NCBI GenBank assembly: GCA_965112735.1
Contig: OZ218964.1
Coordinates: 1,178,001 to 1,242,000, forward strand
Source of the DNA: Phaeosaccion multiseriatum
Lineage: Eukaryota; Protista; Ochrophyta, other classes
Length of the DNA stretch: 64,000 nt
Reading direction: 5' to 3'
The notes beneath the pieces are model-generated. The model made no database searches. It was not told where the DNA came from and was given only the letters and a program-made list of their open reading frames with translations. A program made the translations under genes and the position numbers. This document shows positions 1-47,550 of the stretch, piece after piece. How positions within the stretch are numbered: position 1 is the stretch's first letter; each line of letters opens with the position of its first letter.

Positions 1-1296
1 GGGGCATGAAGGTGAAGGTGAGACCAGAGAAGCTGTAGTCCATGCCGCCGTTGAGGGTCAGCTCCAGGGGGTAGGTACCCGCGGCGTGGGGGGGAGCCTT
101 ACACAGCACCGCGGAGGATGAGAGGAGGATGGCCTCTGAGTCAGTGGCGTCATCGAATCTGCACCGAAGCAGCTTCTTGCTGTTGACGTTGTCGTCACTG
201 TCGTCAGTTGCGTCCACAAAATTACGCCCTGTCACGAGTACCTCCGTACCCACGGGCCCGCGCGGTGGGTTGGCCGCATGTAGCTCCACTTGTTGGTGAT
301 ACGTAAACGTCGCCTGTGTGTAGGACGGAGGAGCGAAGGTGACATTGTTGTTGCTCACCGCCACCGTCACCACGTTGGATAGCGCTCCCGGGGGCCGGGG
401 GGGCGACAGGCAAACCACGGAATGCCCTGCGGGGTCCACCGAGAGGGCCCGAACGGTGGCGGAACTCCCCGAGCCGAAGCGACACACGACATTGGCTTCT
501 GATTCCGTCACGCCCGTACCAAAGTGGTTCCCCGTGACGGTGACACGCGTATAGCCCGAGGGGGGCCCGAGCGGGGGCGAGAGGGACACCACGGAAGGGT
601 CTTCGGTGAAGGAGAAGCGATGTCCGCTGGAAGAGAAGGTCACGCCGTTGCTGCTCACCTCCAGGATGGCGTTTCCGGGTCGGTGTACAGGCGCGACGCA
701 TCGCAGCACTTGCTCGCTCTGAAACACGGCTCGGACAAAGGTCGTCGTCGTCGAAGAAGAAGAAGGCGAAGGGGATGGCACCATAATGCCACCACCACCA
801 CCACCACCACCACCACCACCAAGACCACCATTCCCGCTGCCGATGGAAGTGAACGCGCAGGTGAGATTGGCGGTATTGGTGAAGTTGAGACCCTTCACCA
901 CAATCTCCGTGGCGCCGCTGCTGGCGGGCACCCTGTGGGGGGCAACGCCCAACACCTTTGGCATGGGAAGAGCGGTGGCTTGAGCACGGCTACTCGTCCA
1001 GTCTCCCGTCAAGGCGTCGCCAACCTCCACGTGTATGCCCAACGGGCTCACGTGCAGCGAGTCCAGCGAGGGAGGGACGAGGCACTTGATCACGACCTCT
1101 CCCTCCTCATTACTGCCACCGCCGGAGATGATCGTCCGTTCCACCAAGCCCCGGGACACGAGTGGAGCGGGCTGCCCCAATCCAAGACTAGTTCGACTAG
1201 TCAGTCCTCCTTCCAGTCCTACTGCCGGTTCGTATCTACAGATGGCCACCTCAGCTGTTCCGTTGTCGGTGTCAGGACTGCTGCCGCTGCTGCCGC

Positions 1297-1330
<34 letters not shown>

Positions 1331-2471
1331 GCTGCTGCTTCCGAACCAAGACGAGAGGGTGACGGGGTAAACCCCTCTGCCCGAGGTGACACCTTCCGAC
1401 AGAGCCCGTTGCGTCCAGGAGGGAGTGGTAACTCGAGGGAGGGGTTGGAAGGTGAAACGGGTCGGCTGAGTGTAGGGCTTTCGCGTACCAGCCGCCACGA
1501 GCAACACATCCACCTCCTCCTCCTCGTCGTCGTTGTCGTCGAATCCAGTCGTCGCCATTGCTGAGTGCGGAGGAGTGATACATCTCACTCGGTCTGTGGA
1601 GAGCAGCAGAGCGGGCACAATGTGGGGACCAAAGGCGCAGAGGGTGTCTTGGCGGCCAATGTTGAAGCCGGTCAGAGTCACCACGGTGCCTCCCGCTGCA
1701 CTCCCACGCGGGGGATGGATGGAAGTGAGCACGGCGAGAGGCTCGAAGGTGAAGCCCAGGGGGGCGCCGCGAGTCACAGGTTGGCCACCTATGGATACAG
1801 TCACACGCACCCCCAGGGGGGCGTTAGTCCATTCGCTGGGCAGAGCAGGGGTGACGCACACAACGCTCGAGGACGACTGCACCGTGCCGTTGCTGTGTAT
1901 CACCAACTGCTCATACTGCTGAGAAGAAGAAGCAGAAGAAGAGGAAGAGGAAGTGAAGGTGCATCGTACTGCCGCGGCCCGGTCAGAGCCCCCTCCTCCT
2001 CCGCCTCCGACGCGAAGATTGTCTCCGGCGATCCAGAGCTCCGTGCCTCCACCCGACGGGCCCGAGAGGGGCCAAAGTGATGTCACAACTGGCGGATGGA
2101 CGTATTCGAAGCGCAAGCCGCTGCTGGTGCGCTCCTGCCCTCCCACGGACACCTCCACGGCTACTGCTCCGGCTCGAAGCCCGACGGCGGGCGGCGAGAG
2201 GCAGCGGAGGCGAGAGGAGGAGTAGAACGTGGCTCGGCTGCTCGTAGCAGTCCGCATGCTGCTGCCGCTAGGGCCCGTGACCCGACTAGTGGTGGTGCTG
2301 TCGTCTCTTCCAAAGTGGCACACTAGGTCCGTGGTGTTGGGCCAATTTGCCCCTCGGACGAGGATCTCTTCCCCGCCGTAGATGGATCCAAAAGAAGGCT
2401 CCAATCCTAGCACCTCCGACGCCTCCACATACGTGAACTCCGTCCAATCACCACCACCACCACTAGTCGCA

Positions 2472-2521
<50 letters not shown>

Positions 2522-5500
2522 ACTGCTGTAGTCTTGGCCGTTGGTCGACACCGCCACGCTCACACTTCCCGGTGCGTGAGGAGGACTCAAGCACTCCAGC
2601 GTGAAGTCGTCAATGAACACTGCAGGTACGCTCAGCGTCTTCCCGAAGCGGCAGCGCAATAGAGACCTCGACCCAGAGCCACCTCCACCGCCATCCACTG
2701 CCATCTGGAACCCTTTGCCCTTGATCTGCACCGTGGTGGAGCCCCGGTGGGAGCCCGTCGTCGGACTCAGCTCGAGCACCGTCGGGACAGGTCCGTACGA
2801 GAAGGTGGCCGTGGATATCCAGGCTCGGAGGCCTCCTCCTCCTCCTCCACCACCACCACCACCCGTCACCACCGTGACCCGGGCAGTTATGTGGGCATCG
2901 GTGGTGGTGGTGCCATCGATCCCGGCGGCGGAAGGAGGACGGGGCGGAGTGATGCACTCGACCTGCCTCGACGACAGCCACCTGGCCGGTACGCTCACAC
3001 TCACACTGCCCCCATCACCACCGCCACCACTGCTGCTGCTGCTGCTGCTGCTGCTCCCGTTCTCAACAGACACACTGCCCACCCCATGTTCCTCCTCCTC
3101 GTCAAAGTCAAACTCGAACAGGCACTCCAGCCCTCCGAAAAGATTGACAAAGCCTTCGCCGGACACAACGACGCGGGTGCCCCCTCCCTCCCCTCCGTGG
3201 CTGGGCGAGACTCGAAGCACGCCGGTGGGCTGCAAGTAGCGGAAGTAGGTACCACGACTGCTGTGCACCGAAGACGACCCCCACGCCACGGTAAGAAGGG
3301 CCATCGGAATATCCGCACCACTGACGCCTAGACTACCATCGCCTCCTCCTCCCCCTTCCCCAAAGCCCCCGCTCCCTCCTGCCAGCGACTGAGCCACTGC
3401 ACTGAGCGGTGGCGACACACACGTCACAGTGTGCGTAGTTGGGTCCACTCGCAGGGGCAGGGCACGCCAAGTCCCAAACACACACGTCAGCTCACTGAGC
3501 GCTTCTGGCGAGGCAGGCAGCTGAGTGAAAGAGGTCGTCACCTCGGTGCCACCTAAGCTCCAGCCAAAGGCAGGCACTGCCTCCCCTACCATCTGCAGAG
3601 GCGGCACGTACGCAAAGGTCATCCGGGCCGAGGCGCCAACATCTTCCTCCTCCTCATCATCATCATCCTGCTGCTGAGAGGCAGGAGAGCCGTCCACAAG
3701 CAGCGAGACAGTGGTGTTGCCTTCCCACTCCGAAGGCGGGCTGACGCATTGCACCAATGTGCTGTTGACGAAGGTCGCCACGCTGTCCAGCCTGATAATA
3801 CCGATGCCGAGCCCAACCCCACCTTCATCGAAAGAAGGAGGAGAAGAAGCGAAGTGGCAGAGGATGCGGCTGTACGGGGAGAAACTGTTGCCCGATACGA
3901 CGATGAGTGTGCCACCCGTTGATGGTCCGCTGCGGGGCTGGATTGAGCGCACTCGAGTGGCTGCACGGTACGTCAGCGTGGCGGCTGGAGCTGACGACGA
4001 TGACGTCAGCGCGGATGTCATATACGACGTGGCACCGGAGGAGAAGTGATCGTCCACGCCGTTGAGAGTGACGCCCACGTGCACCCTCCCGGGGGGGTGA
4101 GGCGGCGTCTCGTGGCAAGTAATCTCGGTGGAGGAAACCCACACCGCGGCCGTCGTCATCCTCCTTCTTCTTCTGCCATCCTCTTGTTCCTCTCCTTCTG
4201 CGAGGCTTGACAACAATGACGAAGAAGGCGGGTCCTTGAATACGCAGGCCAGCGTGGCTGAGGGGTGGAAGCCGAAGCCGTAGAGCGTCAGCTGCCCCCC
4301 CCTGGCGCTCGTCCTGCCCGTCTCGGGGGCGTGTCTGGGCGATACAGCAGCCATGTGGGGCGCCTCGTAGTACGAATAGCCCAGGCCGGAGCGACTAAAG
4401 TCCGCACCCCCGTTAATCGACACCTCCACAATCACAGAGCTTTGGGTGGCGGTCAGGTCTTGATGAATGGGTTCCCACGGAGGCGTCAAACAACGTACAC
4501 TGCTGCCAACCAAGTGGTCCAGCAAGACGTCGTCGTTGTTGTTGTTGTTGTTGTTAGGTCGCTGGTCATCCGCGTCGTCGTCGAGTGTAGAAGATACGAG
4601 CGAAGCGAGCACGTTGCGCTGAATGCCGCCATCCTCACTAGAGAAGCGACAGTACAGCTCGTTGGACTCTGAAGCAGCCTCCAGCACGGACGCGCTCACC
4701 CCCGCCACAGCCACCGTCAGGCTCGTTCCTCCACACCCCGGACCGGAAACAGGCTCCAACGCCGTGGTGAGCACCGGCCTGACGAAGGTGTACGTGACGG
4801 CGTCGCTCTCGCTGGTCCAGTGCGCCCCTCCATCCGCCGACACAGCCAGCGCCACCTCCCCCTCGTGCCCCACATGAGAGGGGGTGGTGCATTGCAATTG
4901 TCGCCGACCTCGGCCTTCTCCTCCTTCGCTGCTGACCTCCTGGGCGGCGACGACGACACTCCCGAAGCGGCATTGCAGGCTGTTGCTTAGGCTGTTGTTG
5001 TCCTTCTCCTCGACGCCGTCGTCACCAGCTGTAGAGGCAGAGGAGACAGGCTTGCGTCCTGTCCATGTTACGGTCACCACCGAACCGCCCAAGCTGGACC
5101 CACGGGAGGGTGTGACGCTGTGCACCGTCTGAAAGGGGATGACATGGAGCCTGGCATAGGCCGTGGACATGTCCACTCCGTTGTTTGTCACGCGCACACT
5201 CACAGGACTGTCAACTTGTGTCACAGAGCGGGGTACAGTGCACTGCAACAGGGAGGGAGACAACCACAGTGCAGCCTCGGAGAGCACGCCTGTACAGGCT
5301 CGGGCAGTTGGTGGTACAGCAGTAGCTGTGGTGTTGTTGCTGCTGCCGCCTCCAAAGCAGCACGCCAGCGAGGGAGAGTTGCGGAAGCCGGAGCCCGACA
5401 CCAACACCAGCTGCTGCTGTTGGTCATCGGCCTGATGGTGGTCGTCGTCGTTGTCTTCGCCAACAGCATTGGGTCTCTCCAACACGGTGGATGGTGTGGT

Positions 5501-7927
5501 GTCCACAACCAAGACCTCCTCGAAGTGGAACCAAAGACCCGTGGACGCCGAGCTAGTGCTCAGGAAAGCCCCCCAATCACCACCACTCTCATCACTCTCA
5601 TCTCCCTCCTCAGTCTCGTCCTCATTCTTCGCCTTGGAGGAAGAGGAGGTGAGGCGACGGCTGCGGAGGTGCTCCCCCGAGACGATTCGAATGGGCATGG
5701 AGACCGATTGGGCTTGTGGAGGGGCCTCACAAACCACCTCCTCCGAGGAGAGCACGGTCGTGGAGAGGCCTTCCGTCTTACCAAAGTAGCACAGCGTCCG
5801 AGGGATAGACATGTCCTCCTCATCACCATCGCTCGCCAGGACGAGGGGGGTGAGGAAATTCGTCCCTGATACGGTTACACGCGTACCTCCCTCCAGAGGG
5901 GCCGACAAGGGCCGTACGGAGCGGATGGTGGGCGCGCTGGAGTAGTAGGCGAAGGTGTCATGACCGAAGGTGTTGTCATGGTCAACGTCATCACCATCAC
6001 CGCCGCCCTGCCCCTGCTCCTGCCCCTCTCGAGGAGTGCGAAGGCTCCAATCGAGCCCTCCGTTGAAGCTCACGCGCACCGACACCACCGCCGCTGTATC
6101 ACCAACTTCTGTGCCATTGCCGCTGCCGCTGCCGCTGCTGCTTGGACTCACACACCTCATCTCAGTGCTGGAAAGCACCAACGCGGTAACAATGTCCGCC
6201 TCCCCAAAGAGGCACACCGCTTGCTCTGTACTACCCACGGCAAAGTTTGCTCCGGTCACAGTCACTTCTGTCCCTCCCATACTCGGACCAAGCGAGGGAC
6301 TCAGCGAATGGACCACAGGCGGTAGCTGAAAGGCAAACGGCAAGGCAGGCGTGCTGAGTTGCTGCCCACCGTTGACAGTGACGCGTACGTCAGCAAGAAT
6401 GACGTCACTGTCACCGTCAGCGCCGTTCAAGTACGCACTTGCTGATGATCCCAGTCCTGGCACCCCCGGGCCCAAGAGGTCTGTGAGGGCAGGGGCCGAG
6501 CACTCCATGGTGGAGTTTGATATCCATCGCCCTTGCACCTGCACCGACACCGGCATCGGCACTGAGGAGTTGTGCCTCATCATCAGCTGGCGACGACTAC
6601 TGAAGTCACATGACAGGCCAGGTAAGTCAGGGAGGAACATTCCGTCCAGCAGGACCGATGTGCCTCCCCTGGCCGCTCCAGATGTCGGGTAGAGCGACGA
6701 GACGATGGGTGGGAGAGTGAAGTGGATGGGCCCTGCAGGGACCCATTCGTGTCCGTTAACCGTCACCCACAGCGAGTGAAGAGAAGCAACTTCGCTCCAC
6801 ACCTCACACGCGATGCTGCTGGATGACAGGAAGGAAGCGCTCACGTCCAATGGGGCAGCCGTAGCAGCACCACCGCCACTGGAACTTGTAGTAGAAGAAG
6901 GAGTGAGGCGGCAGCTGAGTTGTGGAGTGTCGAAGAAGCCCGAGCCTCGCACTACCACCCTCAAGGCGGAGGAAGAGGAAGAAGAAGAGGAAGAGGACGT
7001 CGTCTTGGGGCTGCTGTTGTGAACGATGCCCGCGTTGGGAGTCACAGAGTCCACTTGCGGGCTCCGCGCATACTTAAACACAGAGGAGCCCTTTGAGCTG
7101 CTGTTTGAGGTCCCGTCCGAGCTTCCGTTTGAGCTTCCGTCGTCGCCCTCAGCCTCACCTCCATCACCGGCGCTGCCGGTCAGAGGGAGCAAGCGTCTGC
7201 CGGCCATGCTTACGTGGAAGTCCACCTCCACATCCGTACTTGTGTTGGCGACGACCTCCAGTAAGGGAGGTGCCAAGCACATCAGGCTGGTGGCGTTGAC
7301 GAGCGTCGCCCTCACCTCGCGGAGACCGAACCAGCATGATAGCTCCACTGGGAGGGAAGAGGCTCTACCTCCACCTCCACCCTTAGTAGCATTTGTACCA
7401 CCAACAGTAGTGGGGGACTCAGGGCCAGCAGCAGGCCAAGCCATGGCCCTTGTTGTGAGCAGGTTTGCCCCGGTGACGGTTACGGGAGTCCCTCCGCCCA
7501 GCGCTCCGACGGCAGGGGTCAGCACAGACGAGATTTTGGGGTCTGCTGCGAAGACAAAGACCGCCCTGCCATGAGAGGTAAAATCTCTGCCGTTGTTGGA
7601 CATCTCCACCACGACTTCGAGACTGGTATCTCCCCTTCCGCCTCCTCCTCCTCCTCCTCCTCCTCCTCCTCCTCCTCCTCCTCCTCCTCCTCCTGCTGCT
7701 GCTGCTGCTGCTGGAGCTTTAGACTGTGACCGTGCGTTGTGAATCTTGCTGATCTGTTCTTGTCGGAGGAGAGGAATTGGGCACTCTGCCTCAGTGCTGG
7801 ACACCCAACGAGCAGCGACGATCCCTGCCTCGCCAAAGGAACACGATAGGCTCTCCGTATTGTCAAAGCCTGAGCCCCGCACCACAGCCACAGGCCGAGC
7901 TTGCGAGGAAGATGATGATGATGATGG

Positions 7928-8025
<98 letters not shown>

Positions 8026-10178
8026 GTGATGATGACATCTTCTCCCCCGGCTCAATCTCCAGCGTCGTGACCCATGAGGCGACCACTACCGTCGGATAAA
8101 CGGCAGCTACACGGAGAGAGGACACGTAGCTGAAAGTATGCGGCGACAGACGGGCGTTCGGCTCTGCCCGAAGGTGGTCGGACGAGAAGGTGAGGCCGTC
8201 CGTGCTCACACTCACCTCCACCAACACGTCGTCGCCAATCGCGAGTCCAAGGTCAATGTTGCCGGTCGGGGGGGCGGGGGGCGCCTTGCAGGTGAGAGCG
8301 GACTCCGAGATGAGTTGTGCAGGCACCACACTCTCGCCGAACTTGCAGCGTAAGAGAGTGTCACTGCTGCTGCCCATATGACTGCTGCTGCTACTGCTGC
8401 TGCTGCTGCTGTTGCGGCTGTCCATCTCTGTCTCGTCGACAAAGTTCTTGCCTGTGATAGTCACCACGGTGCCCCCTACACTGGGCCCGTTGCTCGGCTC
8501 CACGCGGCTCACCGTTGGCACAGGCATGTAGGAAAAGGGTAGCGCCGTGGCGGCTCCGACGACGGGGGCGGCTCCTGCACTGGCTCCTCGAAGGTCGAGA
8601 GAGACCAGTACAGCTTCGCTGCTGTAGTGATAGCTGGAGCTGTTGTAGTAGTCGTCGTCGCCATTGAGGGAGGAGGAGAAGCTTCGATTCCCTTCTCCTC
8701 CTTCTCCAAAGGCGGCGACAAGGCCAAGTGCAGGGGCGAAGCAAACGACGGTGGTTTCGTCCAGTTGCATAGCGGCCACTCGCCCTGCCCGGCCGAAGTT
8801 ACAGCCCTTGACGAGCATCGCTCCGCCACTGACACCACCGAAGTTAGCACCCTTGACCACGACTTCCCGATTGCCCGTGGAGTATCCTCGGGAGGGGAGG
8901 AGGCGGTGTATATGGGGGTCGGGGTGCACAGTCAGGACAAGTTGATGGTACAGCAGTGGTGCCACCACCCCGGCGACTGCTGTATCACCAACTGCTGATG
9001 CTGCTGCTGGCGACGTTTCTTCTGACGGGAAGAAGTCGACTCCGTTGATAGAAAGGGCCACATGTGCTTGTCCCACCGGCAGGCGCGCGGGCAGGGGACA
9101 CCTGACCTCCGTCCTAGACACCCAGTAGGCGGGCAACACCACAGCATCAAGAGCCCGCTTTGCTGCTGTAGCACCATCTGCGATGGACGAGAAGCGGCAG
9201 GAGAGTAAGGGCGACTCCCTGAAGCCGAAGCCGTTCAGTGTGACGACGGCTCCCTCAGAGGCCGTCTCTACAGTGAAACTCGGGCTCACCGCCAGCACAG
9301 TGGGCGCCGCCTCGTAGGCAAACATCCAGCGGCGGAGACTGAAGTCCACGCCGTTGGCTGAAACCGTCACTGCGACCTTCGCGTCCTCTCCGCTCCACTT
9401 GGGCGACACACACGTAACGACACTGGTGTCAGGATTGCTGCTGTTGCTGCTTTGCACGACTACGCTTTGCCTCGCACTCCTCCCCTGCCCACGCCCCTGC
9501 GGCCCAACGCTCTCAAAGCGGCACGCCACAACCTTGGTGCCCAGACCGGGCCCGGTCAGCACCACCTCCGTACCCCCGCTTAGAGAACCTGACAAAGGGT
9601 GCATGCTCTGCACCACGAGTGGCTCTGTCACAAAGGTGAAGGTCATGTGGGTCTGGAAACCCTCCTCACTCCCACCTGCCAGGCTCTGTCCAGTGCCATC
9701 CACGAGACGCACGGTCACCGTGCCGCCCTCTCCTCCTGCGCGGGCGGGCGTTACACAACCCACACGGTGTGCGTCGACCTTGCCCGCGGGTACAAGGTCG
9801 TGAGGCCCACCGCCGCCGAAGTCGCAGTAGTAAGGAACGTCTCCTGGCACCCTCGGTCCTGACAACACCACCTCCTCCTTCCCCTCCTCCAGCTCGAGAA
9901 GAGCAAGACCGCCGCTGATGGCAATGGTCACCATTGTGCCTCCCTCCACCGGCCCGAAGGAGGGCTGGAGCTTCGTCATCGTGGATACTCCGATGGCGGG
10001 GTGATACAAAAAGTCCGTCGCGCTCACCCCACCGTGCAGTGAGTCTCCTCGGCAGTTGCTTGATACCTCAAGGCGGATACGACCGGGGCCTGCCTGCATG
10101 CGGGATGGTGTGACACAGCGGACGTAGTCGCTCGACAGCCACACAGCAGCACTACTGCTGGTGCTGCTACTTGTGCTC

Positions 10179-10213
<35 letters not shown>

Positions 10214-15942: not shown

Positions 15943-15977
<35 letters not shown>

Positions 15978-17938
15978 ACTGCTCTTGAGCCAGACGGAAA
16001 CGAGTGTACCGCCCAGCTCGGAGCCCTTCTGTGGCTCGACCTCCACCACTCCCAAGGCTCTGTAGAGGTAGCTGAGACCCCCCCCTCCCTCCTCCTCCGC
16101 AGGGCACACCACACCATTCACAAGGACGTCAACAGAAACTGAAACTGAAACCTGCCCGCCATCTCCCCGGCCCCACGCTTCACTTCCACTGCCATCCGTA
16201 TCACCATAATCACCACCATTGGCGACGACTGATGCAAGGGGCGGACTCTTGCACTCCACGAGTGTGGACCGCAGCCAACGTGCCGGCGTGGTCACAGACA
16301 CAGAGTCTCCTTCTCCTCCTCCTCCAACACCACCCCCACTGAAGCGGCAGCTGAACGAATCGCCTTGGGCAAAGTGCCGGCCGCTGATCCTCACCACGGC
16401 TCCACCGGAGGAGGGGCCTGTCGAGGGCTCAATCGCCAGGACGATAGGCTCTAGCGTGTACGTGAAAACAGGAGCCCCGCCTTCGGGCGTGTGAAAGACG
16501 TAATGGCCATACACATCGTCCTCGTGCTCGTCGTTATCGTCGCGGATTCTTGACAAGGACACCTTCACCTGTACGTGTTGGTCATCGTCGTCGGGCTCTC
16601 TGAGGAGGGCAGGGACAGCGCAACGCACTTCAGAGGAAGACACGAAGCTCGCCCGCACCAGCACTGGAGGGGAAGAGCCTCCCTCTCCATCGTCGTCGTC
16701 ACTGTGAGTCTCAGTGACGAGAGCGAATCTGCACAGGAGGCCAAGGCCACTGTTGTGATTGGTGACACCGTCAAGTAGTCCGAGCTCCCCCTCGTTGTCG
16801 TCGACGGCTTGCGTCGGGTCTCGAAAGCCCTTGCCGAGTACTGAGATGACCGTTCCGCCCAAGGGGCTGCCCTCCAAAGGCTGCACACTACGCACAGACG
16901 CGGCTTCGACGTACTCAAACCAAGCCGCAGCAGCGCCGTCGCCAACAGGCGAATCACCAACTGGCGACGCAGAAAAGAAGTCGACGCCGTTGTTGCTCAC
17001 CGCCACCACCACAGCCTGCCCCCCTCCTGGGATGGCAGTGGATGGGATCGGCCTTGGTGCCACACACCTCAGCTGCGTGGAGCTCACAAAGTTCGCCATC
17101 ACCTCCACATGTCCAAAGCGTACCCTAAGGGCACTCGTCTGCGCAAAGTTGCTGCCAAAGACAGTCACCAGGTCGCCCCCCTCCGTGGATCCTCGGTGCG
17201 GTGTCACTTTCTCCACCACCGCAGGCGGGTAGTAGGAGAAGCGCACCCCCTCCGTGGAGGTGAAGTCCTCGCCATTAGCGCTCACCTCCACTAAAGTTTG
17301 ACGGAGAGGACTGAGAGCATTTCCACCACCGCCATCACCACCACCATCATCATCAGATAGGGGAGGTGCTAGGCACTGTACTTGCCGAGGTGACACCCAC
17401 TGCGCCGGTACCACTTGACCACCGAAGCGACACACAAGAGCACTGCTGTCTACAAAGTTGTGTCCGCTCACTTTGACCAGCGTACCGCCTGTGACAGGGC
17501 CGCGAGAGGGGGAGGCCCAGAGCACAGACATGGGTCTAAGGTAGGTGAAGCCCAGCGCGTCGAAGGTGAAGTCCCCTCCTCCGTTGGCGCTTACCTCCAC
17601 CGGCACGAGGCCGGGGCGGTGCGCGGGCGGGGCCTCACAGACCACCGCAGTCCGCACTGCTGTATCACCAGCTGCTGTATGGTCTTCTTCTTCTTCATCA
17701 TCACCTTGGCGAAGGGTCTCGATGGACAGTGCCGGTACCACGACTGACCCAAAGCTGCAGCTGACCGCATCCAATCGTTGCTGTATCACCAACTGCTGCT
17801 GCTCATCCTCAGCCTCGCCCTCGCCCGTGGGAAAGTGAAAGAGGTTACTGACAACAATGGTGACAGTGGTGCCGCCCTCCAGGCTCCCGCGCGAGGGGGC
17901 CATCGAAAGTGCAGATGCCGGTGGCCGGAAGAGAAACG

Positions 17939-17980
<42 letters not shown>

Positions 17981-20900
17981 AAGGAAGTGCCGTTGAAGGG
18001 AAGTCCACGCCGTTGTTGCTCACTGAAACCGTCACAGCACCTGCCGGCAGGGGCGGAGTGATACAGCGGAGCTCCGTTGGGCTGATGAAAGTCGGGCGAA
18101 CTTGGTGGCTGGTGTGTCCAAATTGTACCCGGAGGCGGTCAGAGAAGATAAACCCCCTTCCGAGCACTGTCACCTCGGTCCCTCCTTGCGTTACCCCCGA
18201 GGAAGGCTCCAATGACTCCACCACAGTGTCTGCGTAAAAGACAAACGAGTTGGACGAGGAGGACGAGGAGGAGGTCGAGTCGCCACCGTCCACTGGGATG
18301 AAGTCCACGCCGTTGAAACTGACGTAAAGGGGCAGGGACTTTCCATTTGCTGCTGTGGCCTCCTCCGGCGCCATGGTCGGAGTCATGCATTGGAGCTGCG
18401 TTTCCGACAGCCACTGCGCTGCCACAATCACAGCAGTTCCATTGCTGCTGATGCTTCTGCTGTTGCTGCTGCTGGTGCTGTTGCTGGTGCTGTCCCCTCC
18501 CCCAAACACCCCCCCTCTTTGCCCCTCCTCGTCGCCCTCCTCCACTTGCTGGTCGGCTCCTCCTCCTTCTCCGAATCGACACCGCAGCGAGGCGGTATTG
18601 ACGAAGCTCTGCCCTGCCACAAGCACCATTGTTCCTCCCGAGAGCGGCCCGCTCGACGGACTCATGGACCAAACCCGGGGGGGCTCGAAGAGGGTGAACT
18701 TGAAACCGTCGGAGCTGAAGTCCACCCCGCCATTGAAGGACACCTCTACATCCACTACAGTAGACACAGCGACCACACTGCTGTCGACAGATGACGACGA
18801 CGAGGAGGACGTGGAGGAAGGCGGCGCGAGGCACTTGACGTGACTGTCCGAGACCACCGCTGCGGCGGGACTGACCAAGTCTCCAAACCTGCACAGCACA
18901 CGCTGCGCATCTCTGCTGCTGCTGATGGTGGTGGTACTGCTGCTGTTGGCGACGGCCGCCCCGGCGTAGCCCCCTCCTCCCCCTCCCGTCAGCCCCTGGC
19001 CGTAGATGTTGACGAGTGTGCCCCCTTGCCAGCTGCCCATGGAGGGATGCAAGCTCGTCACTCTGGCGGTCGGCTTGTACGTGTACGTCACTGCCACCAC
19101 AGGGCCACGACTCTTCTCCTCCGTCGCTGTAGCACCAACTTGCACACCAGACACAACAGACCCATTTTGGGTGTGGTAGGTGTGGAAGGTAGCGGCAGCA
19201 GTGCTAGCAGTAATAGTGCTGAAGTCCTGCCCATTCAGCGTCACGGACACATCCACCGCTCCAGGGGTGAGGGCCGCAGGAGCCCGACACTTGAGTGCTG
19301 TGGCATTGAGCACCACAACTTCCTCCACCACCTCGAATCCGAAGCGCACCTGCAAGCCAGTTGTGAGTGCGAAGTTGTGGCCCCGAAGGATCACCTCTGT
19401 GCCTCCAAGCGAGGCGCCCGTGTCGGGCTCTACACTCGAAACAAGGGGGGCAGGATAGTAGGAGAAGCTGGTTGCTGCTGCTGCTGTATCACCAACTGCT
19501 GCTGCGGCTGCTGACGCTGATACTGATGCTGTCCCAAAGAGGCCATCGCTGCTGCTGTTGCTGCTCCTGCTGCTGTTGGTGAAGTCTTTCCCGTTGAGAC
19601 TCACCTCCACTTTTACAGTCCGACGTTCTTCCTCTTCCCCGTCGCCGCGGTCAAAATGCGAGTTGCTGGTGCTAGCGTTGTTGCCGCTGCCACTGCTGCT
19701 ACCACTGCTGGTAGTAGCGTTGCCGAAGAGGAAGGCAGCAGCAGGAGGGCTGGTGCACAGCAGCTCTGAGCTGGATAACCAACGCGCGCTGGTCGTCACA
19801 ACCCCCCCCGCCCCCATGTCTCCAAAGGAGCAGAGCAGCCCTTGGCCGTCCACAAAGCCCATGCCCTGAATCACCACTTGGGTGCCCCCGAGGGCCGGTC
19901 CCGAGGAAGGATGCACGCCCAACACCTTAGGTTCGTTGAAGAATTGCAGCGTGACGCCGTCGGATGAAAAGTCCATCCCGTTCATCGACACCTCCACCGT
20001 CACGTATCCTGCTCCACCCCCCATCTTCCCATCCTGGTGATGTCGGCTCAGGCTCGCGAGAGCAGCTGGTGATGTCGGCATTGGGCACCGCAGCTCAGAC
20101 TCAGAGACGAACTCCGCAGGAACCACAATCTCTCCTCCTCCTCCTCCTCCTGTGGCAGTGGTGGCGTCGGAAAGGGAGGAGGAGGAGAAGGAGGAGGAGG
20201 AGGAGCCGAAGCGGCAGCGCAACAATTCCCCGGTGTCTTCAAAGCCCACTCCGTAGACGCTCACCAGCCGCTGAGGCGCATCGTCGTCCCCTTGCCCTTC
20301 AGCGTCACCATCCACTGCCATCGTTGGAACCCTTTCCGGGCTCACGGCAAGTACCGTATGGGCCCATCGGAAGTGAAACGCCAGTCCGTCTCCAGGGGGG
20401 TTGGTGGTATTGGAAGAGGAGGAGGAGGAGGAGGAGGAGGAGCTCACAAAATCGACGCCGTTGTTGCTCACAGAGACCGCAACAAAACCAGAGACCGGTC
20501 CAACTTCTGTACCACCAACTGCTGCGGCAGGCAGAGGCGGGGTGGTGCACCGAATGAGCGTGTCATTCACGAAGACTGCGGGCACTTCCACCAGACCACC
20601 GAAGCGCACGCTCAACCGCCCTCTGCCCCCCCCCTCCGAGGAGGAGGAGGAGGAGGAGGAGGAGAAGCCCCTCCCTATAATGTCTAGCTCTGTACCCCCC
20701 TGCTCCGGCCCGAAGGCTGGACGGAGCGCCAGCAGGACGACGGGTGGCACGTACTCGAATGTTACGGCGCCAAGGATGCTGGTGTGAGTGCTGCTGCTGT
20801 CATTGCTGCTGCTAGTGCTGCTGGTGCGATTGCCCCCTTCCTGCTCTTGTTGCGTCATCGTCTCGTTGTAGGAATAGAAGGAGGAGGAAGAGGAGGAAGA

Positions 20901-23900
20901 GGAGGGAGTGGAGGAAGAATGGTAGTAGTACTCCACCCCGTTGAGGCCCACCCCCACAGACACCAGCCCCGCCCCATCCACTGCCATCCCCAGCCACGTG
21001 CTTGGCGGAGTTAGGCACTCCAGGGTGGTGCTCGACACCCACCGAGCCGGAGCTGTTGCTGTTGCTGCATCACCCATTGCTGTGGTTGCATTCTTCGCTG
21101 TATCACCAGCTGCTTCACTTGTATTCGTCGTCGTCGCCGCTGTGAGCACCTCGCTCCTGAAGCTACACTGCAGCATGTGGGTATCCACGAAGTTCGCACC
21201 TCGCACACGCACCCTGCTTCCCCCCCGGGGAGGACCCGAGGGGGGGTCGATGCTGAGGACCACGGGCTCCGGAGCGAGCCAAAACTCAATGCCGTTCGTG
21301 GTACGGGTGGCGACGTCGTCCCCCTGTTGCACCTCCACTGTCACACGTCCAGCAGTTGGTGATACGGCAGCAGCAGCAGCAGCAGCAAGAGCCGGAGTGG
21401 TACACACGAGCTCTCTTTCAGAGACCCACTCGGCCCTTACAACAGCGAGGTCGTCGCCAAAGACGCAGTACATGTCCGTGTCGGAGTGGAAACCTTCCCC
21501 CAGGACGGTGAGATCCAGCCCCCCCCTCGCACTCCCCACGCTCGGCACCAATGCCTTGATCTTGGCCTCACTGCGATACTCGTATAAGCCCCTCCACCCC
21601 TCCTCCCACCCTCCCCACTCGTCGGTCGATGCCCATCCCACAGGGACAAAGTCCACACCGTTGTTACTCACAGAGATGTTGACGAACGTCCCTCCCCCTC
21701 CTCCCCCCGCCCCCTCCCCTCCGTCCGCCAGCGCCAGTCCAGCGGGCAGTGGGGGTGTGATGCATTGCATCTGTGTGCTGCTAATGACCGTGGCATCCAC
21801 GTCAACAAGCCCACCGAAGCGCACACTAGAGTGGCCTGTGAGGAGGAAGCCTGACCCTTCCAGTCTCACTACTGTGCCTCCGTTGATCGGTCCGGTGGCG
21901 GGGAGGCAGGCAGACACAATGGGTAGCGAGTGGTAGGTGAAGCTCGGGCCCTCACCCTCGCCCTTGACAGGGAAGAAATCCTGTCCGTTGAGGCTGATTG
22001 CCAGCGCCACTCGCCACCTCGTCTCCTCCTCCTCCTCCTCGACTCGGAAGCCCTCCTCCTCCTCCTCCTGCTGCTGCTGCTGCTCGGTCTCCACCGTATG
22101 AGGAGGAGATGTACACTCTATGCGAGCGCTCGACAGCCACCGAGCCGCCGTAGCAACGCCACCGAAGGAGCACCGCAGCTGTCCCGTGTCCACGAAGCCA
22201 AAGCCCGACACGATGACCACCGTGCCGCCGGACACAGGCCCTGTAGAGGGTCGCGCCGCCACCACCTCGGGCTGCTCCACGTAATTATACCACATGCCGT
22301 CGTTAGATCTGTCGACGATCGTCCCTTCTCCTCCGGGAGGAGAAGACAGCAGCAGCACCTCCAAGGCAACTGGTCCTGACGCTTCTGCCGCCGGAGCCGT
22401 GCAGCGAATCTCCGAGGGGGACACCACCACCGCCTCCGATGAAACTTGTTTCCCAAAGCTGCAATGCACCTCGCTACTACTAAGCATTGTACTAACCCAG
22501 TCCTCCTCCTTCTCGTCCTTTTCGTCCTCCTCATCCTCGCTGCTGAAGGCAAAGTTCCGCCCAAAGACCGTCACCTCGCCCCCTCCCGACAGGAAGCCTA
22601 GTCTCGGCTGGATGCTGTCCACAACGGGGGCGAGACGAGACTCAAACACCAGTCTGCTGTTGGTGCTGGTGCTGGTGCTGGTGCTGGTGCTGGTGCTGGT
22701 GCTGGTGTTGCCCTCCTCTGCCCCTGCGGCACCCCCGCCGACAAAGTCCACGCCGTTGTTGCTGACCGAGACGCCCCACACACCTGGCGACAAGCCTGGT
22801 GGAGTGATGCACCGCAGCTCCTCGCTGCTCACGAAGGTGGCTTTGACATCCACTGCCATCTTGTCGCCGACTGACCACCGCACAGTCAGGCTGCTGCTGA
22901 ACACAAAGCCCTGTCCGTGAATGGTCATGACGGTCCCCCCTTCCGTGGACCCTTTTGGCGGGTCCAGACCAGTCACCGCCATATCGACTTCGTAGTATGA
23001 GAACGTTAACAGCCCACCACCACCCCTGCCCTCCTCGGCGGCTGCTGCTGCTGTATCACCAACTGCTGCTGCTCCTTGGTAAGACACAAAGTCCATCCCA
23101 TCGATGCTCACCTCCACACCCACAGCTGACGACGCGCCGGATTCCACTCCGCTCGGTACTGGCGGAGTCGTGCATTGCACCTCTGTCCCCGAAACCCACA
23201 CGCCGGGAACCGAAACCTCTCCCCCGAATCTGCACATCAGACTCTCCGAATCCACAAAATTCGCCCCGCCTACCACCACTGCTGTACCTCCCTGTCGAGG
23301 GCCGCTGCCCGGCGTAACGGACAACACAGCTACATCCCCGGTGAAGGAGTAAAGTACTCCATCTTGGGTATAGTCCACCCCATTGAGGGTCACCTCCACC
23401 TCCACCAGCTCAGCGCTGTCCACCATATCGGGAACCAGGCACGTTACCCGTGTGGGCGAGAGGTACGTTGCCGGCACGATAACTTGATCCTCCCCGCTGC
23501 TGCTCCATGCAGTTTGTTTGCGTTGCTGCCCCTGCTCCCCCTCCTCGCTGCTCCTCCTCCTTCCGAAGCGACAAGCGAGGTCGGTGCTGTCTTCAAAGCC
23601 CCTCCCTGTGACTGTGATGCTGCCCCCGCCCCGCAGCCCCCCCTGTCTTGGCTCCACGCCATGGACTGCAGCCGAGGTGTAACGGAAGAGCGCCGGCTCT
23701 GCACCACCGCCACCGCTGGATGACCAACTAGTGCAGCTGCTGCCTCCGACGGTGGTCACGCCCACCTCCGCGAACTCGAGAACGTCCGTTACGAACAACA
23801 CGATATCCAAGCTGCTGTCGCTGTGACTACTGTATGACCAAGTACTACTGCTGCTGCTGTTCTTGCTGCTGCTACTACTGAGTCCCAAGTAGAGAAGATT

Positions 23901-26900
23901 CGGAGCGTCGAGCGGGACGGAAAAGGCCGTCAACCCCCTCACGCCCTCGTACGTGGTTTGCAAACCGCGGCTCCACACCACTCGCTGCTGTCCACCCTCT
24001 TCCCCTTCCTCTCCCTCCCCCGACCTTGTGCTGCCGCTGTTGAGCACTTCTGCTGCTGCTGCATCAAGACTGTATATCTCAATACTGTAGTCCCCCCCCC
24101 CCCCCCCACCACCACCACCACCCCCAGTGAAGGGGACCCCGCTGCTGCCGTCTAGGAGGTATGTACTTCCTCTGACGATGTTGATGATGCCAGCCCGCCC
24201 CTGTACTGACAGATGCGGTATCCCCTCCTCCTCCCCCTCTTGCCCGTTCTGTAACGCCAAGCGGAGCGTCGTCGGACCCACAGCGGAGGAGGGCGGCGCC
24301 GGAGGCACCACACACGTCATTTGCTGCCTTCCGCTGGACACCACCGAAGGTACAGTATCGCCTCCGATGCTGCAGGAGTGTGTACCCGGCTCGAAGTGCG
24401 TTCCGGTGAGGGTAATGGTGGTGCCGCCCCCCCGGGGCCCACCAAAGGGCTCAATGCTGAGGAGAGTAGGAGGCGGTGTGAAGGAGAAGCTCAGCACTGA
24501 CACGTGCCGCTCCACGCCGTTGGTCCGCAGCCCTAGAGACGCCACGATGGGAGCGCTGCTGCTGCTGCTGCTGCTGCTGTATAACCAACTGCTGCTGCTA
24601 CTGCTGCTGCTGCTGTTTCCCGTATGACTGCTGCCGCTGCTGCCTCTCACGTGAGCAGCCGAAGCCGCAGACGGGGTGCGGCACTCTACCTCCGTCCGAC
24701 TCCGCCATGTTGCTGGTACCGACGCCTCCACCTGCACTCGCACGGCCGTGCTCCTCATGCTACTGCTGCTGCTACTCGCATCATTTGCTCTCTCCTCCTC
24801 CTCCTCCTCCTTCTTCTCCTCCTCCTCCTCCTCCTCCTCCTCCTCCTCCTCCATCTCCTCCTCCACCTCCACCCACCACTGGAAGACGCATTCCATCCCG
24901 TCCGTAGGGAGGAAGCCTTCTCCTTGCACCAGCACAGAGGTGCCTCCACACCGGGGTCCCGACGAGGGCCACACCTGCTTCAGCTCAAGCGGTTTCTCCG
25001 CGAGGAACTGCAGAGCGTTGGACCAAAAGTCTTTGCCGTTGGTCACGCGCACGAGCACAAAGGAGGCAGCGGGCGGAAAGGAGAGGGCAGAGGAGGAGGA
25101 GGAATTGGAACTCGAGTTCGCATCCAATCCACCTGCCCTGCTGCCCGGTACGGTGGCGCTCAGGTCAGGGCTGAGGCAGACCAATTGACTGCCATCTTCG
25201 CTGAGCGTGGCCAGTGTGCGCTCCTCCGCGGATCCAAACTGACACTGCAGCGGCTCGTACCCGCCCCCCCCCTCCTCCTCCTTCGCCTTCGCCTCAGCGT
25301 AGTAGGCTGCAAAGCCCGACCCGGAAATCCGCACCTCCGTACCCCCCCGAGTCGTACCCCCCGGGGGCGATAGCGCCTCCAATTGAGGAATGAGCCCCGC
25401 CCCTCCCGCCGTCACGCTGGTGCTGCTGCTACTGCTACTGCTATTGCTATTGCTATTGCCCTCTGTAGCTGCAGTTAAGCCGATCTCGAAGGTCGAGGCT
25501 TCAGTGTGCCCCGTCTGTAGGTCAGTGACCTCCACAGAGAAGCTGTCGAGTCCGTCGAAGCCGGGGTAGCGAATGTACATGATAGGGGCCGCATTGACAT
25601 AGTTCACCACGTCGCTGGCGGCTCCCGACAGACTCACTCTGCTGCTGAACTTGCTTGGGCCTCCTTCGTTCCAGAAGATGATACCCACTTGTTCTGCACC
25701 CACAGAATCCTCAACCTCATCATACTCCAGCATGAGGGCACTATTGGGGCTCTCAACCCCAAGCACAAAGGACAGGTTGCCACCCGCCCCCGCCCCTCGT
25801 GCATCAATGGTTAAGGGGCTGAGACGCATACGCTGGAAGCTTGGCAGTTGTACCTCCGGGGCGTCGTTGACCGCCAGCACCGAAATAGGCAGCACTTGAG
25901 ACACTGCTGCTTCCTCCTCCCACCCCTCCTCCCCCTCCCCCTCCCCGCCGATTTGCTGTACAATAATGTGCAAGAACTCTACGTGCTGCAGACTGTTAAA
26001 GTCCGTGTGGGGGTGGTACGTGACCTGCTGCAGTGCATTGTTCGCGTCCGCCAAAGACCCCGTGAACACAATGGAGGAGTCCCACTGGCCGCTGGACCCA
26101 TTCTCAAAGGTCAGCCCTACCTCGCTGGCAAGGTCGAGCCGTCCGCCCACCACGGACAAGCGCACGCGGAGATTGAGCACTCCGTAGGGCTCCACGTCGG
26201 CATCATACACACTAATGCCATGGATGGACAAAGAACCATCTTCCTCCACAGAGGGCCATCCCGGCAAGGTCACCGTAGGGAGGTCCGGGGCGGGGAGCAC
26301 GAGGAAGGGAATGGTGACGGTGTCTGTCAACGCCTTGCCCGCTCCTAGGTACATTTGATCGTTCACGGTGATGGTCAGCTCCTCCTCTCCGTACCAGTTC
26401 AGCAACCCTCTGTACTCGAGGCGGCCCAGGGCGTTGTTGACATCCGCTGCGGGCCCTGTGAATATGACGGTTTCGTCTCGTACGCCGTCTCCTGCGCTGA
26501 AGGAGAGCCCCACGGTGCCGTTGAGGGTTATTGTGCCGTCATGGACGGTCATGACCACTGCAAGCTCGTAGGCGTCGGCCACCTCCATATCTATATCGGT
26601 TACCGCAATGCCCTCAATCACCAAGGTAACGTCCTCCACAGCCGTCAAAGACGAAGAGGAAGTAGAAGGAGACCACACCGCCTCCGGCACCTGGATGACT
26701 GGCTGCGTGTTCTCCGCATTGACAAGCACAAGCAGCTCCTCGCCCCCCTGGAATGACTCGCCCACGCCATTAAGTGCCATCCACGGCACCGCGTCCTCCC
26801 CATTGTCGGAGTAGAGTGCCTTCCACTGCAGCGCCGCTGTGTGCTGCCCTGAGGCCAGCGTGAGGACGAGCTGCCCTCTAAGCTCAGCCACCCTTCGCTC

Positions 26901-28549
26901 CGCCCCCTCCTTCTGCCCCCCCGAGTGTCGATAAGGCACACCGTCGATCAACAGCCGCGCCCCAATGGAGCTCCAACGCTCCCAGGACCATGAATCAAAG
27001 GTAGGGTGTCCGTACTGCGTGACTGGCAGACCGTACGTGAAGAGCACGGTTGAAGGAGCGTGCAGAGAGAAGGACAGCACCTTACCGCCCACCGTGTGCC
27101 ACTCCTCCCGAGGGTCGGACATGAGTACCGGGGTGAGCACGTTCTGGCTGACCATGTCGAAGCGCTCTCCCATGGCCATAAGGACGCGGCTCTGTGCGAA
27201 ACCGTCGAGGAAGGAGGGGCTGTTGCGCCACACTCGCACGTACGAGCCCCACTTCTTCCACTGCAGAGTAACGTTGTGGTCGCCTGCAGGGAGGTTGAGT
27301 ACAAGATCCCTCTCTAGGATGCCGCTGTTCATTTGCTTGCTCATAACGGCGAAGGAGCTCATGGACTCGCGGAAGTGCACGCCGTTGACGAGGAGCCTCG
27401 CGGAGACGTCCTCCATGGGCTGTACCACTGAGAAATGGGAAGGTAGGTAGGTAGGTAGGTAGGTAGGTAGGTAGGTAGGTAGGTAGGTAAAGTAGGTAGG
27501 TAGGTGGGTAGGTAGGTAGGTAGGTAGGTAGGTAGGTAGGTAGGTAGGTAGGTAGGTAGGTAGGATGGTAGGTAGGTAGGTAGGTAGGATGGTAGGTAGG
27601 TAGGTGGGTGGATGGGTGGGTGGGTGGGTATGCAAGAGGTGGGGTGAGGACAAAAAGAGCGGCCTTCTAGCAATCAACACGTCAACAGCCCACAACAAGA
27701 GCAGCAACAAGCGAAGTGAAGGGGGCCACGGAGCAGAGAACCAAGACCAGCGTACGTACCATGTGAGCCGAAGTCCTGATCAGGGCGCACACTCATTGAA
27801 TATAGGATGCGGAGGGAGGCAGCCTCCGCCAACGTGAAGGCCAGGTAGCCCTCCGCCACGTCCTCCCACTCTTCCGTCTGCGATATTCTCGCGTCACTAG
27901 TGGCGTACGAGCTCCACAAGTATCGATGCTGCGCAGTCACCACCACCGACCTTGCCGTGGTGAAGCCGTCGGCGGCCGAGGGTACATTCCTCCAGGAAGT
28001 GACAATGCCATTTCCCGACATTTTCCATTGAAGGGCAATGGTGTGGTTACCTGGACCTAGTCTGGTGACCAAATGTCCTCCGAGTGTATCAACAAAGGCC
28101 CCGTACGGCGTGGCCGGGGACGTGTGTGTGGAGGACTGGCGGAAAGGCACGCCATTTACCATGAGGCGTAGCTGCAAGTAGTCTCTAGTGCCTCCTGTTA
28201 TTTGCTTCTGCGAGAGGAAAGAAGAGCCCGGCTTCTCTGGCTGCATGGCGCTCACCGCCATTGAGTATGACACGAGCACTGTCACCTCATTGTCCACCTC
28301 CATCTCCAGCACGGTGTCTGGCACGTGCGTCCAGTTGCTGCTCCCTACGCCCGGCTCTGGTCGCATAAGCTCCACATCCGTGAGCGGCCTAGCGCTCCAC
28401 ATCAGCCCATCTCTGGAGGTTAGCGACGATCCTGCTCCTGCCCCTGCGATTGCTCCCAGCACCGCAACGGAGAGCAGGAGCACAAGACAAAACAGGGGAG
28501 CCAGCAATAACCGCAGCAGCCCCCCTGTCATGTCTATTCTATTCTTCAT
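1..28549 (-). CDS. Giant secreted/surface IPT/TIG-repeat protein (>9,300 aa, 3' end outside the window); exons 28549-27760, 27427-15371, 15114-<1
   Basis: N-terminal hydrophobic signal peptide ([23 protein letters not shown]). Two phase-1 GT-AG introns (27759-27428, 15370-15115) join the exons in frame (...FGSH-VVQPMED...; ...[11 protein letters not shown]...). Exon 3 is in the same frame at 15112 and at 58, gave IPT-type sequence wherever I spot-translated it, and the ORF track lists no terminated ORF in that frame. Repeats match the IPT/TIG pattern P-x-x-G-x3-GG-T-x-V-x-V-x-G-x-x-F...C-x-FG...C-x-x-P...V-x-VS-x-NG-x-DF...F-x-Y; I count 25 in exon 2 and estimate ~35 more in exon 3. Confidence 0.9.
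7910..8035. repeat. (GAT)n trinucleotide tract encoding a ~40-residue poly-Ser linker in the giant protein
   Basis: Near-pure GAT repeat; the coding frame of exon 3 reads it as TCA codons. Confidence 0.85.
27441..27630. repeat. (TAGG)n tetranucleotide microsatellite in intron 1 of the giant gene
   Basis: Directly visible; it explains the spurious PTYL-repeat N-terminus of ORF 15258..27710. Confidence 0.95.
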
Positions 28550-47500: not shown

Positions 47501-47550
47501 ACCACACCGACGATCAGAAGAGCAGTTGCCCTCTCCCTGAAAAGCGTCAT
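44505..47550 (-). CDS. TXNRD: High-Mr thioredoxin reductase, selenoprotein; exons 47550-46153, 45911-45315, 44993-44505
   Basis: FAD-binding YDYDLIVIGGGSGG, redox centre GGTCVNVGCIPKK, GGSYVALECAG, TTVFTPLEYG, GIHPT. The C-terminus reads GGT TGC TGA GGC TAG = Gly-Cys-Sec-Gly-stop (TGA 44513-44511, TAG 44507-44505). Confidence 0.95.

Follow-up and report, generated by a model that had tools for sequence, protein, structure and literature searches.

Contig OZ218964.1 of the ochrophyte Phaeosaccion multiseriatum carries, on its minus strand, a gene that raises an unusual question: how does a eukaryotic surface protein that looks like a bacterial giant adhesin end, is it one protein, and what might it do? 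The gene lies in a 64,000-nt stretch of this contig (positions 1,178,001 to 1,242,000; G000:C15:1178001-1242000, referred to here as the window), which belongs to an assembly of 67.1 Mb in 22 contigs. A preliminary description, made from the letters of the window, had followed the gene through three exons and a long array of IPT/TIG domains up to the window edge. We analysed in addition the 40 kb past the window start, running database, family and fold searches exon by exon and using the joined gene model for local length, composition and alignment to proteins that had already been fetched. The answer developed below is that the locus is probably one gene for a type-I-oriented (N-out), multipass-anchored giant surface receptor or adhesin, whose membrane domain would transduce binding or pull.

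Six exons form a single open frame

Two minus-strand frames without stops dominate this end of the window, one running from 27779 to 15261 (4,173 codons) and the other from 15127 to 2 and on across the window edge, where a further 2,270 nt bring it to 5,802 codons in total and add two TIG domains and three Ephrin_rec_like stretches. Frames of this kind are not due to chance, because at 60% GC stops come about every 31 codons. The minus-strand gene model built around them has six exons and encodes 11,823 amino acids (aa; 1.24 MDa) with no internal stop, and all five introns are GT..AG with phases that match across the model. Its parts are as follows, with C15 coordinates for those that extend past the window.

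28549-27760, minus strand: exon 1 (790 nt), which opens with the ATG at 28549 and encodes the signal peptide, all of head repeat 1 and the beginning of head repeat 2
27428..27759, minus strand: intron 1 (332 nt, GT..AG, phase 1), with its GT donor at 27759, for the most part a CCTA microsatellite
27427-15371, minus strand: exon 2 (12,057 nt), with the remaining head, the cadherin-like repeats and TIG domains 1-25
15115..15370, minus strand: intron 2 (256 nt, GT..AG, phase 1), low-complexity, with TCAC and CCCCACA repeats
15114 to C15:1175730, minus strand: exon 3 (17,385 nt, of which 1..15114 are in the window), with TIG domains 26-63 and then Ephrin_rec_like modules
C15:1175502-1174082, minus strand: exon 4, outside the window, with the last cysteine modules, TIG domain 64 and the start of the juxtamembrane module
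C15:1173634-1173182, minus strand: exon 5, outside the window, where the juxtamembrane module continues
C15:1172832-1169467 including the stop, minus strand: exon 6, with the last ~255 aa of the juxtamembrane module, 11 transmembrane (TM) helices and the cytosolic tail

The model comprises ~35.5 kb of coding sequence, and its product has an isoelectric point of 4.75, 12.8% Ser and 84 N-glycosylation sequons. The in-window exons (790 + 12,057 + 15,114 nt = 27,961 nt) reproduce exactly the 9,320 codons that the preliminary description had counted before the window edge, and the 15-kb exon that it reported as absent from the list of open reading frames (ORFs) is indeed missing there, because the exon runs off the edge and its frame extends beyond. 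It had also placed a signal peptide at the N-terminus, where we find a hydrophobic stretch directly after the ATG at 28549 (the peptide spans model aa 1-~38, with the hydrophobic segment at aa 14-32), and it had proposed a surface protein of megadalton scale, which the full model bears out. Stops or frameshifts in exon 3, named there as grounds for refutation, do not occur, and the 35.5 kb of coding sequence stay open throughout. Finally, where it had called for a look downstream for a stop and a TM or GPI anchor, we found a stop preceded by 11 TM helices.

The positions of the introns bear directly on whether the exons belong to one gene. Intron 1 interrupts head repeat 2, which splicing restores in frame, and intron 3 interrupts a CPxGxYC cysteine module. 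Intron 2 interrupts a TIG domain, the last strand of which, together with the inter-domain linker (11 protein letters), comes from the first codons of exon 3; because this exon-2 TIG domain is completed by exon 3, exon 3 is not the start of a separate gene, and it begins mid-domain without a start codon or signal-peptide context. Single orthologue alignments span junctions 1, 3, 4 and 5, and homologues are colinear with the model over exons 4-6. In three relatives of 6.9-7.5 thousand aa (P0049, P0041 and P0116) one protein begins with the head and ends with the membrane module, and L007, a relative that has few introns or none, encodes the TIG array and the membrane module in continuous ORFs. 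At the level of the assembly, DNA runs from the source sample (n=4, one sample) showed 0 substitutions and 0 indels over positions 12200-18199, and the read contigs over this interval were uniform and DNA-like, with breaks and apparent joints that all fell at CTG/CCT microsatellites.

One could nonetheless suppose that this is not one functional gene, and that our model describes a silent or decaying locus, or has joined two or three neighbouring genes, such as one for a secreted protein of head and TIG domains and another for a protein of TIG domains and the membrane part. Such a supposition draws on a gene that is without transcript evidence, having been met in DNA runs only, and on a second junction that is without a clean orthologue alignment. 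It has to contend, however, with an exon 3 that starts inside a TIG domain and not at a start codon or signal peptide, with 35.5 kb of coding sequence free of stops and frameshifts and in agreement with the DNA reads over the 6 kb tested, with relatives that encode the head and the membrane module as one protein, and with strongly diverged repeats (median 32% identity) that have been kept open in frame. We regard it as very improbable.

A long TIG array carries a distal tip

From the N-terminus to the C-terminus the encoded protein consists of a signal peptide, a triple head, cadherin-like repeats, 64 TIG domains, Ephrin_rec_like modules, a juxtamembrane module, 11 TM helices and a tail. The corresponding features are these.

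26718..28417, minus strand, model aa 45-500: head, three tandem repeats of ~150 aa each, with intron 1 within
25473..26705, minus strand, model aa 505-915: cadherin-like repeats, a clear pair and a third that is divergent, with the cadherin-type linker 'VNDAPEV'
1..25382, minus strand, model aa 946-~9,510 (63 domains): TIG/IPT array, with 61 of the 64 domains in the window and the 64th in exon 4
13283-13324, 14409-14501, 14749-14803, 15930-15992 and 17928-17992: coding trinucleotide microsatellites, examples of a kind found throughout the coding sequence
Model aa ~9,570-10,125, minus strand: Ephrin_rec_like cysteine modules (Pfam), ~550 aa, three stretches at the end of exon 3
Model aa ~10,126-10,950, minus strand: conserved juxtamembrane module, ~830 aa, in exons 4-6, including one TIG-like domain
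Model aa ~10,958-11,480, minus strand: membrane domain of 11 TM helices, from a structure model and hydrophobic segments
Last ~340 aa, minus strand: cytosolic tail, charged and conserved, ending KRFKRK-stop

The identity of the stalk domains is unambiguous in Pfam searches, in which the window pieces matched TIG (PF01833) with E-values of 5e-215, 8.5e-104 and 7e-123. Scored piece by piece over the gene, the matches reached 696.6, 340.2, 401.3 and 82.4 bits, where 20.9 bits suffice. Counting with a profile trained on the gene's own repeats gave 64 domains. The preliminary description had estimated about 60 IPT/TIG domains and suggested Pfam PF01833 as the check; both the count, with 61 domains inside the window, and the matches on all large pieces agree with it. 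The domains recur at a spacing of ~127 aa with a median pairwise identity of 32% and a maximum of 57%, and at an identity this low the array is old and diverged, so that neither a recent duplication nor an artefact of the assembly accounts for it. Across the protein there are 57 homopolymer runs of at least five residues (Ser, Ala, Gln, Glu, Gly), which derive from in-frame microsatellites of the CTG/CAG and CCT/GGA type and which the loops between TIG domains, or inside them, appear to tolerate. Pfam cut-offs were passed only by TIG-type families and Ephrin_rec_like, and the exon scans returned no G8, PbH1, Sema or PSI domain. From the domain number, at ~4-4.5 nm for each of the 64 domains, the array would form a semi-rigid stalk of ~0.3 µm.

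The modules that this stalk would carry at its distal end are less readily assigned. The three head repeats are clearly related to one another (pairwise z 15-25 against shuffles), as the preliminary description had proposed, and they have no match in Pfam. An Atlas feature search paired the head with TNF/C1q-like lectin folds (Bc2l-C_N 0.91, CTHRC1_C 0.88) at a recognition score under the trusted level, and we take this resemblance as a lead only. Of the three cadherin-like repeats proposed earlier, two are clear (C1-C2, z 19.5) and the third is divergent, being not significantly similar to either (z <3). These repeats fall just under the Pfam cut-offs, with 24.0 of the 25.1 bits needed for Cadherin_4 and 22.2 of 23.6 bits for Big_9, and both of these best-scoring families are of bacterial type. 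Both parts of the tip recur at the N-termini of P0049, P0116 and P0041, with E-values of 1e-60 to 1e-51 for the head and 1e-16 to 1e-7 for the cadherin-like region.

At its proximal end the array gives way to cysteine-rich modules with the pattern CPxGxYC, which extend from exon 3 into exon 4, and the first membrane helix lies ~830 aa further on. The intervening juxtamembrane module is without a Pfam match and contains a beta-rich domain adjoining the membrane. In the exon-6 sequence, inspection by eye for the CxC..HL(T/S) pattern of a GPS/GAIN autoproteolysis motif found none.

The protein ends in a conserved eleven-helix membrane domain

An AlphaFold2 (AF2) model of the membrane domain, made with 116 homologues, contains 11 helices and has a predicted local distance difference test score (pLDDT) of 91 and a predicted template-modelling score (pTM) of 0.91; an earlier AF2 model of the whole exon-6 product had reached a pLDDT of 62.7. 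Loop sequences read against the model helices fit an N-out, C-in topology under the positive-inside rule. With an 11-helix multipass C-terminus the protein is not a secreted filament, and the free filament or hair subunit considered in the preliminary description gives way to a gene that continues for three more exons and ends in a multipass membrane domain and a cytosolic tail.

This end of the protein is also its best conserved part. The exon-6 product is 59-65% identical, over 84-96% of its length, to proteins of Choristocarpus, Ectocarpus, Phaeothamnion and Chrysoparadoxa, such that the membrane and cytosolic part holds 59-65% identity across algal classes, whereas the head stands at 29-31%, a figure that comes from more distant full-length relatives. 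Near-invariant acidic residues are located within membrane helices. They are Asp662 in the exon-6 product and, in the family consensus, the Glu of an 'EFS' motif that is itself near-invariant. The strong conservation of this part, together with invariant charged residues, some of them in helices, argues that the membrane domain does more than anchor the protein, and it points to a receptor or transducer rather than a passive stalk.

Searches for a relative of known structure or function were negative. The exon-6 product had no match in Pfam, PDB-sequence or Atlas feature searches, family profiles compared with PDB sequences gave chance rows only, and Foldseek with the pLDDT-91 model found no match in the PDB. 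Going by the model, the domain would represent a confidently predicted new fold, with no Pfam family and no solved relative. Several candidates were set aside along the way. TM9SF/EMP70, tectonic and CLPTM1L gave low TM-scores only in an Atlas shape search with the pLDDT-62.7 model. Meckelin/TMEM67 (PF09773) was matched by a single homologue, P0007, at 17.2 bits and E 0.0014 (cut-off 25 bits), and Foldseek placed it at E 0.4 with the first model and returned nothing with the better one. The genome contains a separate true Meckelin/TMEM67 gene, at G000:C2:3602227-3606758 on the minus strand with seven exon-wise matches, and the organism therefore builds a ciliary transition zone. Pfam searches for PKD_channel/TRP were without match, and no such protein was among the structural neighbours.

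In a run of an exhaustive structural aligner against 48,161 chains, ten of the top 13 neighbours were TMEM16A/K/F, afTMEM16, OSCA1.2/2.3/3.1, TMEM63A and TMC-1/2. These alignments cover 191-268 residues at a root-mean-square deviation of 4.9-8.2 Å, and their Z-scores of 6.3-7.9 are to be read against the aligner's stated noise, in which Z <8 is the usual best without a true match and helical models reach up to 14. The earlier, poorer model had given a similar neighbour list. We treat kinship with TMEM16/OSCA/TMC as an open lead and not as a finding.

Were this kinship real, the protein could be a tethered mechanosensor, in which the 11-helix domain is a very divergent TMEM16/OSCA/TMEM63/TMC channel or scramblase gated by the ~0.3-µm TIG tether, and which would be a single-chain counterpart of the hair-cell tip link with TMC, or of the ciliary MST3-PKD2 of Chlamydomonas. 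The dominance of one superfamily among the neighbours from two independent models is what such a reading would lead one to expect, and 11 helices with the N-terminus outside is the topology of OSCA/TMEM63, with the OSCA1.2 alignment beginning at its N-terminal helix. Conserved acidic residues inside the membrane helices would fit it too, and MST3 offers a precedent of a giant ectodomain fused to a channel-like domain (PMC11015965). Nevertheless, Z <8 is at noise level, and unrelated designed helical proteins reach Z 7.7, as high as the TMEM16/OSCA neighbours themselves. Foldseek and the PDB-sequence profile were negative, as was Pfam, where 14 members searched with an E limit of 10 gave no hit to Anoctamin, RSN1_7TM or TMC, and the large cytosolic loops are placed differently than in OSCA. 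A comparison of the 116-sequence family profile with an OSCA alignment in hhalign returned a probability of 0.4%, a negative that is weak because the OSCA alignment has only six sequences (it was seeded by the genome's own OSCA-like gene, for which a conserved-region search gave five sequences and a first word search none). Overall, we consider a tethered channel of this kind unlikely. Its more far-reaching form, in which stramenopiles and Rhizaria would share a single-chain 'tether plus transducer' class with a lectin-like pseudo-trimeric tip and a divergent TMEM16/OSCA/TMC-type domain, and in which pull or binding at the tip would gate an ion or lipid flux, is one that we hold to be distinctly unlikely.

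Beyond the last helix, the cytosolic tail contains two features that could be of functional relevance. A conserved CxxC...CxxC pair with ~50 residues between its halves (exon-6 product ~880-1,100; C15:~1169530-1170190) may bind zinc, and three alike basic, Trp-containing amphipathic motifs ('IRWWLAQARKR', 'LLQWYRKAQ' and 'AVFWLRTARSR') could be calmodulin- or lipid-binding sites.

The gene belongs to a large family of hypothetical proteins

A profile of the C-terminal module was searched against 1.84 billion representatives. Of the 2,136 clusters that it returned at E<=1e-3, 568 also reached E<=1e-30, and many are proteins of 6-7.9 thousand aa that end in the module. The named members, every one of them annotated 'hypothetical', belong to brown algae, a diatom, the oomycetes Albugo laibachii (7,926 aa), Pythium and Phytophthora, Cantina and the rhizarian Bigelowiella. 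The preliminary description had held that widespread characterised orthologues would reduce its novelty; orthologues are indeed widespread, and none is characterised. In the literature on TIG-array proteins in stramenopiles, oomycetes, diatoms and mastigonemes we found no description of the family. Some members derive from transcripts (Leptocylindrus MMETSP, which is 47% identical to the exon-6 product, and Cantina Trinity), and the family is therefore expressed.

The architecture of the relatives resembles that of the present gene where it can be followed. P0014 has TIG domains and then Ephrin_rec_like modules in the same order, and for P0017 and P0027 Pfam reported the TIG part only, with the cysteine-rich region of P0017 aligning at 51% identity. 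As many as 51 TIG domains are present in partial relatives. The majority of database members are fragmentary, and many of the annotations that we encountered have split genes of this kind or missed them.

Two relatives were noted in passing. The P. multiseriatum genome contains a second giant paralogue at G000:C14:~1881000-1917000 on the plus strand (loci L012-L015, L028 and L029), with exons of 2,060, 1,152 and 2,641 codons, at least 25 TIG domains, ~1,650 aa without a Pfam match and a membrane module that is 33-42% identical to the exon-6 product. L007, the relative with few or no introns, lies on a metagenome scaffold (ZHEN20-1..scaffold_225, 14733-24659, minus strand) tail to tail with a dynein heavy chain gene, an adjacency that may be coincidental.

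The distribution and conservation of the family bear on whether its members could be mainly structural, serving as a spacer or coat (glycocalyx, flagellar or surface hair, wall or scale attachment) with a membrane module for anchoring and trafficking only. The extreme length of the protein would suit such a role, as would its 12.8% Ser, 84 sequons and many Ser/Gly homopolymer inserts, which would carry glycans. The genome has a true Meckelin gene, so that the organism builds cilia, mastigoneme anchoring by MST3 provides a precedent, and the named family members all come from lineages that we take to be flagellate or to form flagellate cells. Yet a passive anchor would need neither 11 helices nor a loop and tail held at 59-65% identity with invariant charged residues, and the conservation of the head and cadherin-like tip in distant relatives argues for specific binding. 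Known heterokont mastigoneme proteins, moreover, are much smaller and of EGF type. A mainly structural role seems improbable to us.

The same family data can be read in light of the cysteine repeat modular proteins (CRMPs) of alveolates, whose large adhesive ectodomain stands on a multipass core and which license exocytosis on contact (rhoptries, mucocysts). A CRMP-like sensor would detect contact of the tip with a surface, prey, mate or pathogen and trigger the release of extrusomes or adhesive vesicles. It would have the same layout as the protein described here, with cysteine modules of the Ephrin_rec_like/EGF type, a multipass core and a cytosolic tail, and the family is present in lineages with contact-triggered secretion, for example in oomycete zoospores. 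Cysteine modules of this type are, on the other hand, common in protist surface proteins, and CRMPs are described with 9 TM helices where we predict 11. Nor does any of the core motifs of our family (ELFHG, HGWK, RWKG and CFSSQ) occur in the CRMP sequences that PMC9815656 gives as a supplement. A contact sensor dedicated to regulated secretion strikes us as rather unlikely.

A proposed mode of action

We favour, as stated at the outset, a single gene for a giant surface receptor or adhesin that is anchored by a multipass membrane domain which would transduce binding or pull. In this model, the TIG stalk would keep two sets of modules at a large distance from the cell, a head that binds a sugar or another ligand and cadherin-like repeats stiffened by calcium. 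A binding event or a mechanical pull at the tip would then pass via the cysteine-rich base of the stalk to the membrane domain, which together with the conserved cytosolic loop and tail might convert the signal into ion flux, a lipid or protein rearrangement, or regulated secretion.

Several observations weigh against this proposal. The membrane domain is without a significant sequence or fold match, so that any activity assigned to it is an inference, and no family member has a characterised function. The search of sequencing runs yielded four DNA runs of one sample and no RNA run holding the gene. At junction 2 there is no unambiguous orthologue alignment, the lone crossing match being at repeat level with 24% identity, a gap that follows from the repetitive nature of the array. 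In addition, the lectin-like assignment of the head has a score below the trusted level, and the length and stiffness of the stalk are estimates from domain counts.

If the proposal is correct, heterokont algae, chlorarachniophytes and oomycetes, crop pathogens among them, would have in common a family of surface receptors that, at 7-12 thousand residues, are the largest known in eukaryotes. These would be candidates for how protists sense contact, flow, mates, prey and hosts at hundreds of nanometres from the membrane. The predicted 11-helix fold would itself be new to structural biology, with a possible kinship to TMEM16/OSCA/TMC or to the CRMP invasion sensors.

Other features of the window

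Elsewhere in the window we noted two further coding regions and one prominent repeat.

39172-42423, minus strand: hybrid histidine kinase of 1,084 codons with CHASE, HisKA, HATPase_c and Response_reg domains, a cytokinin-receptor-like architecture
44514-47577, minus strand: two adjoining frames encoding a pyridine nucleotide-disulphide oxidoreductase (Pyr_redox_2 and dimerisation domain), probably one gene split by an intron

The commonest 12-mer and the commonest 21-mer in the window are both made of a GACT repeat.

Comparison with known systems

The resemblance to a bacterial giant adhesin that the preliminary description had pointed out is apt as far as the overall design is concerned. Like LapA, SiiE, MpIBP and the Bap/RTX proteins, the protein described here has a long stalk of Ig-like repeats (~100 aa each) that would project a binding region, and its tip includes cadherin-like repeats that favour bacterial-type Pfam families. 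Unlike the bacterial proteins, it is encoded by a eukaryotic gene with five introns and an N-terminal signal peptide, its binding modules are at the N-terminal, distal end, and in place of an RTX/type-1 secretion C-terminus, for which there was no RTX or haemolysin-type match in Pfam, it has 11 helices and a tail.

Among eukaryotic proteins, tandem IPT/TIG ectodomain stalks on a membrane protein are shared with fibrocystin/PKHD1, PKHD1L1, plexins, MET and the Tgr proteins of Dictyostelium. Animal TIG-array receptors and Tgr span the membrane with a single helix and have some 3-15 TIG domains, compared to 64 TIG domains and 11 helices in the protein described here. It has neither the G8 and PbH1 domains nor the single helix that define fibrocystin and PKHD1L1, and our Pfam scans gave no sign of the Sema and PSI domains ahead of TIG, or of the cytosolic GAP or kinase, that define plexins and MET.

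Other proteins combine a very large ectodomain with a multipass membrane domain. MST3, the axial protein of the Chlamydomonas mastigoneme, and PKD2 tether an extracellular filament to the membrane (PMC11015965). MST3/PKD2 and animal polycystin-1 share with the present protein a huge ectodomain with Ig-like and lectin-type domains and a multipass membrane domain, of channel type in their case, but they have hydroxyproline-rich helices or PKD/REJ domains in place of a TIG stalk, and the membrane domain described here lacks PKD/TRP similarity in Pfam, PDB-sequence and fold searches. The nearest solved structures to that domain are TMEM16, OSCA/TMEM63 and TMC, at noise-level scores, with OSCA/TMEM63 likewise having 11 helices and an N-out topology.

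The CRMPs are built from ERC and EGF modules on a conserved 9-TM core, which resembles one in Dictyostelium proteins, and they have been proposed to sense contact with the host (PMC9815656, PMC9670195). The alveolate members (CRMPa/b, PCRMP1-4 and TtCRMP1/2) are alike in having a signal peptide, adhesive N-terminal domains, cysteine modules, a multipass core and a tail. They differ in having no TIG array, in their length of 3-6 thousand aa compared to 11.8 thousand here, and in a core of 9 TM helices (Toxoplasma, Plasmodium) or 5 (Tetrahymena) compared to 11; the cores were compared by description and motif look-up only, with ELFHG, HGWK, RWKG and CFSSQ absent from the CRMPs. Set beside all of these systems, the P. 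multiseriatum protein would take its place among giant modular receptors on multipass cores, as a member of a large, conserved and uncharacterised family.

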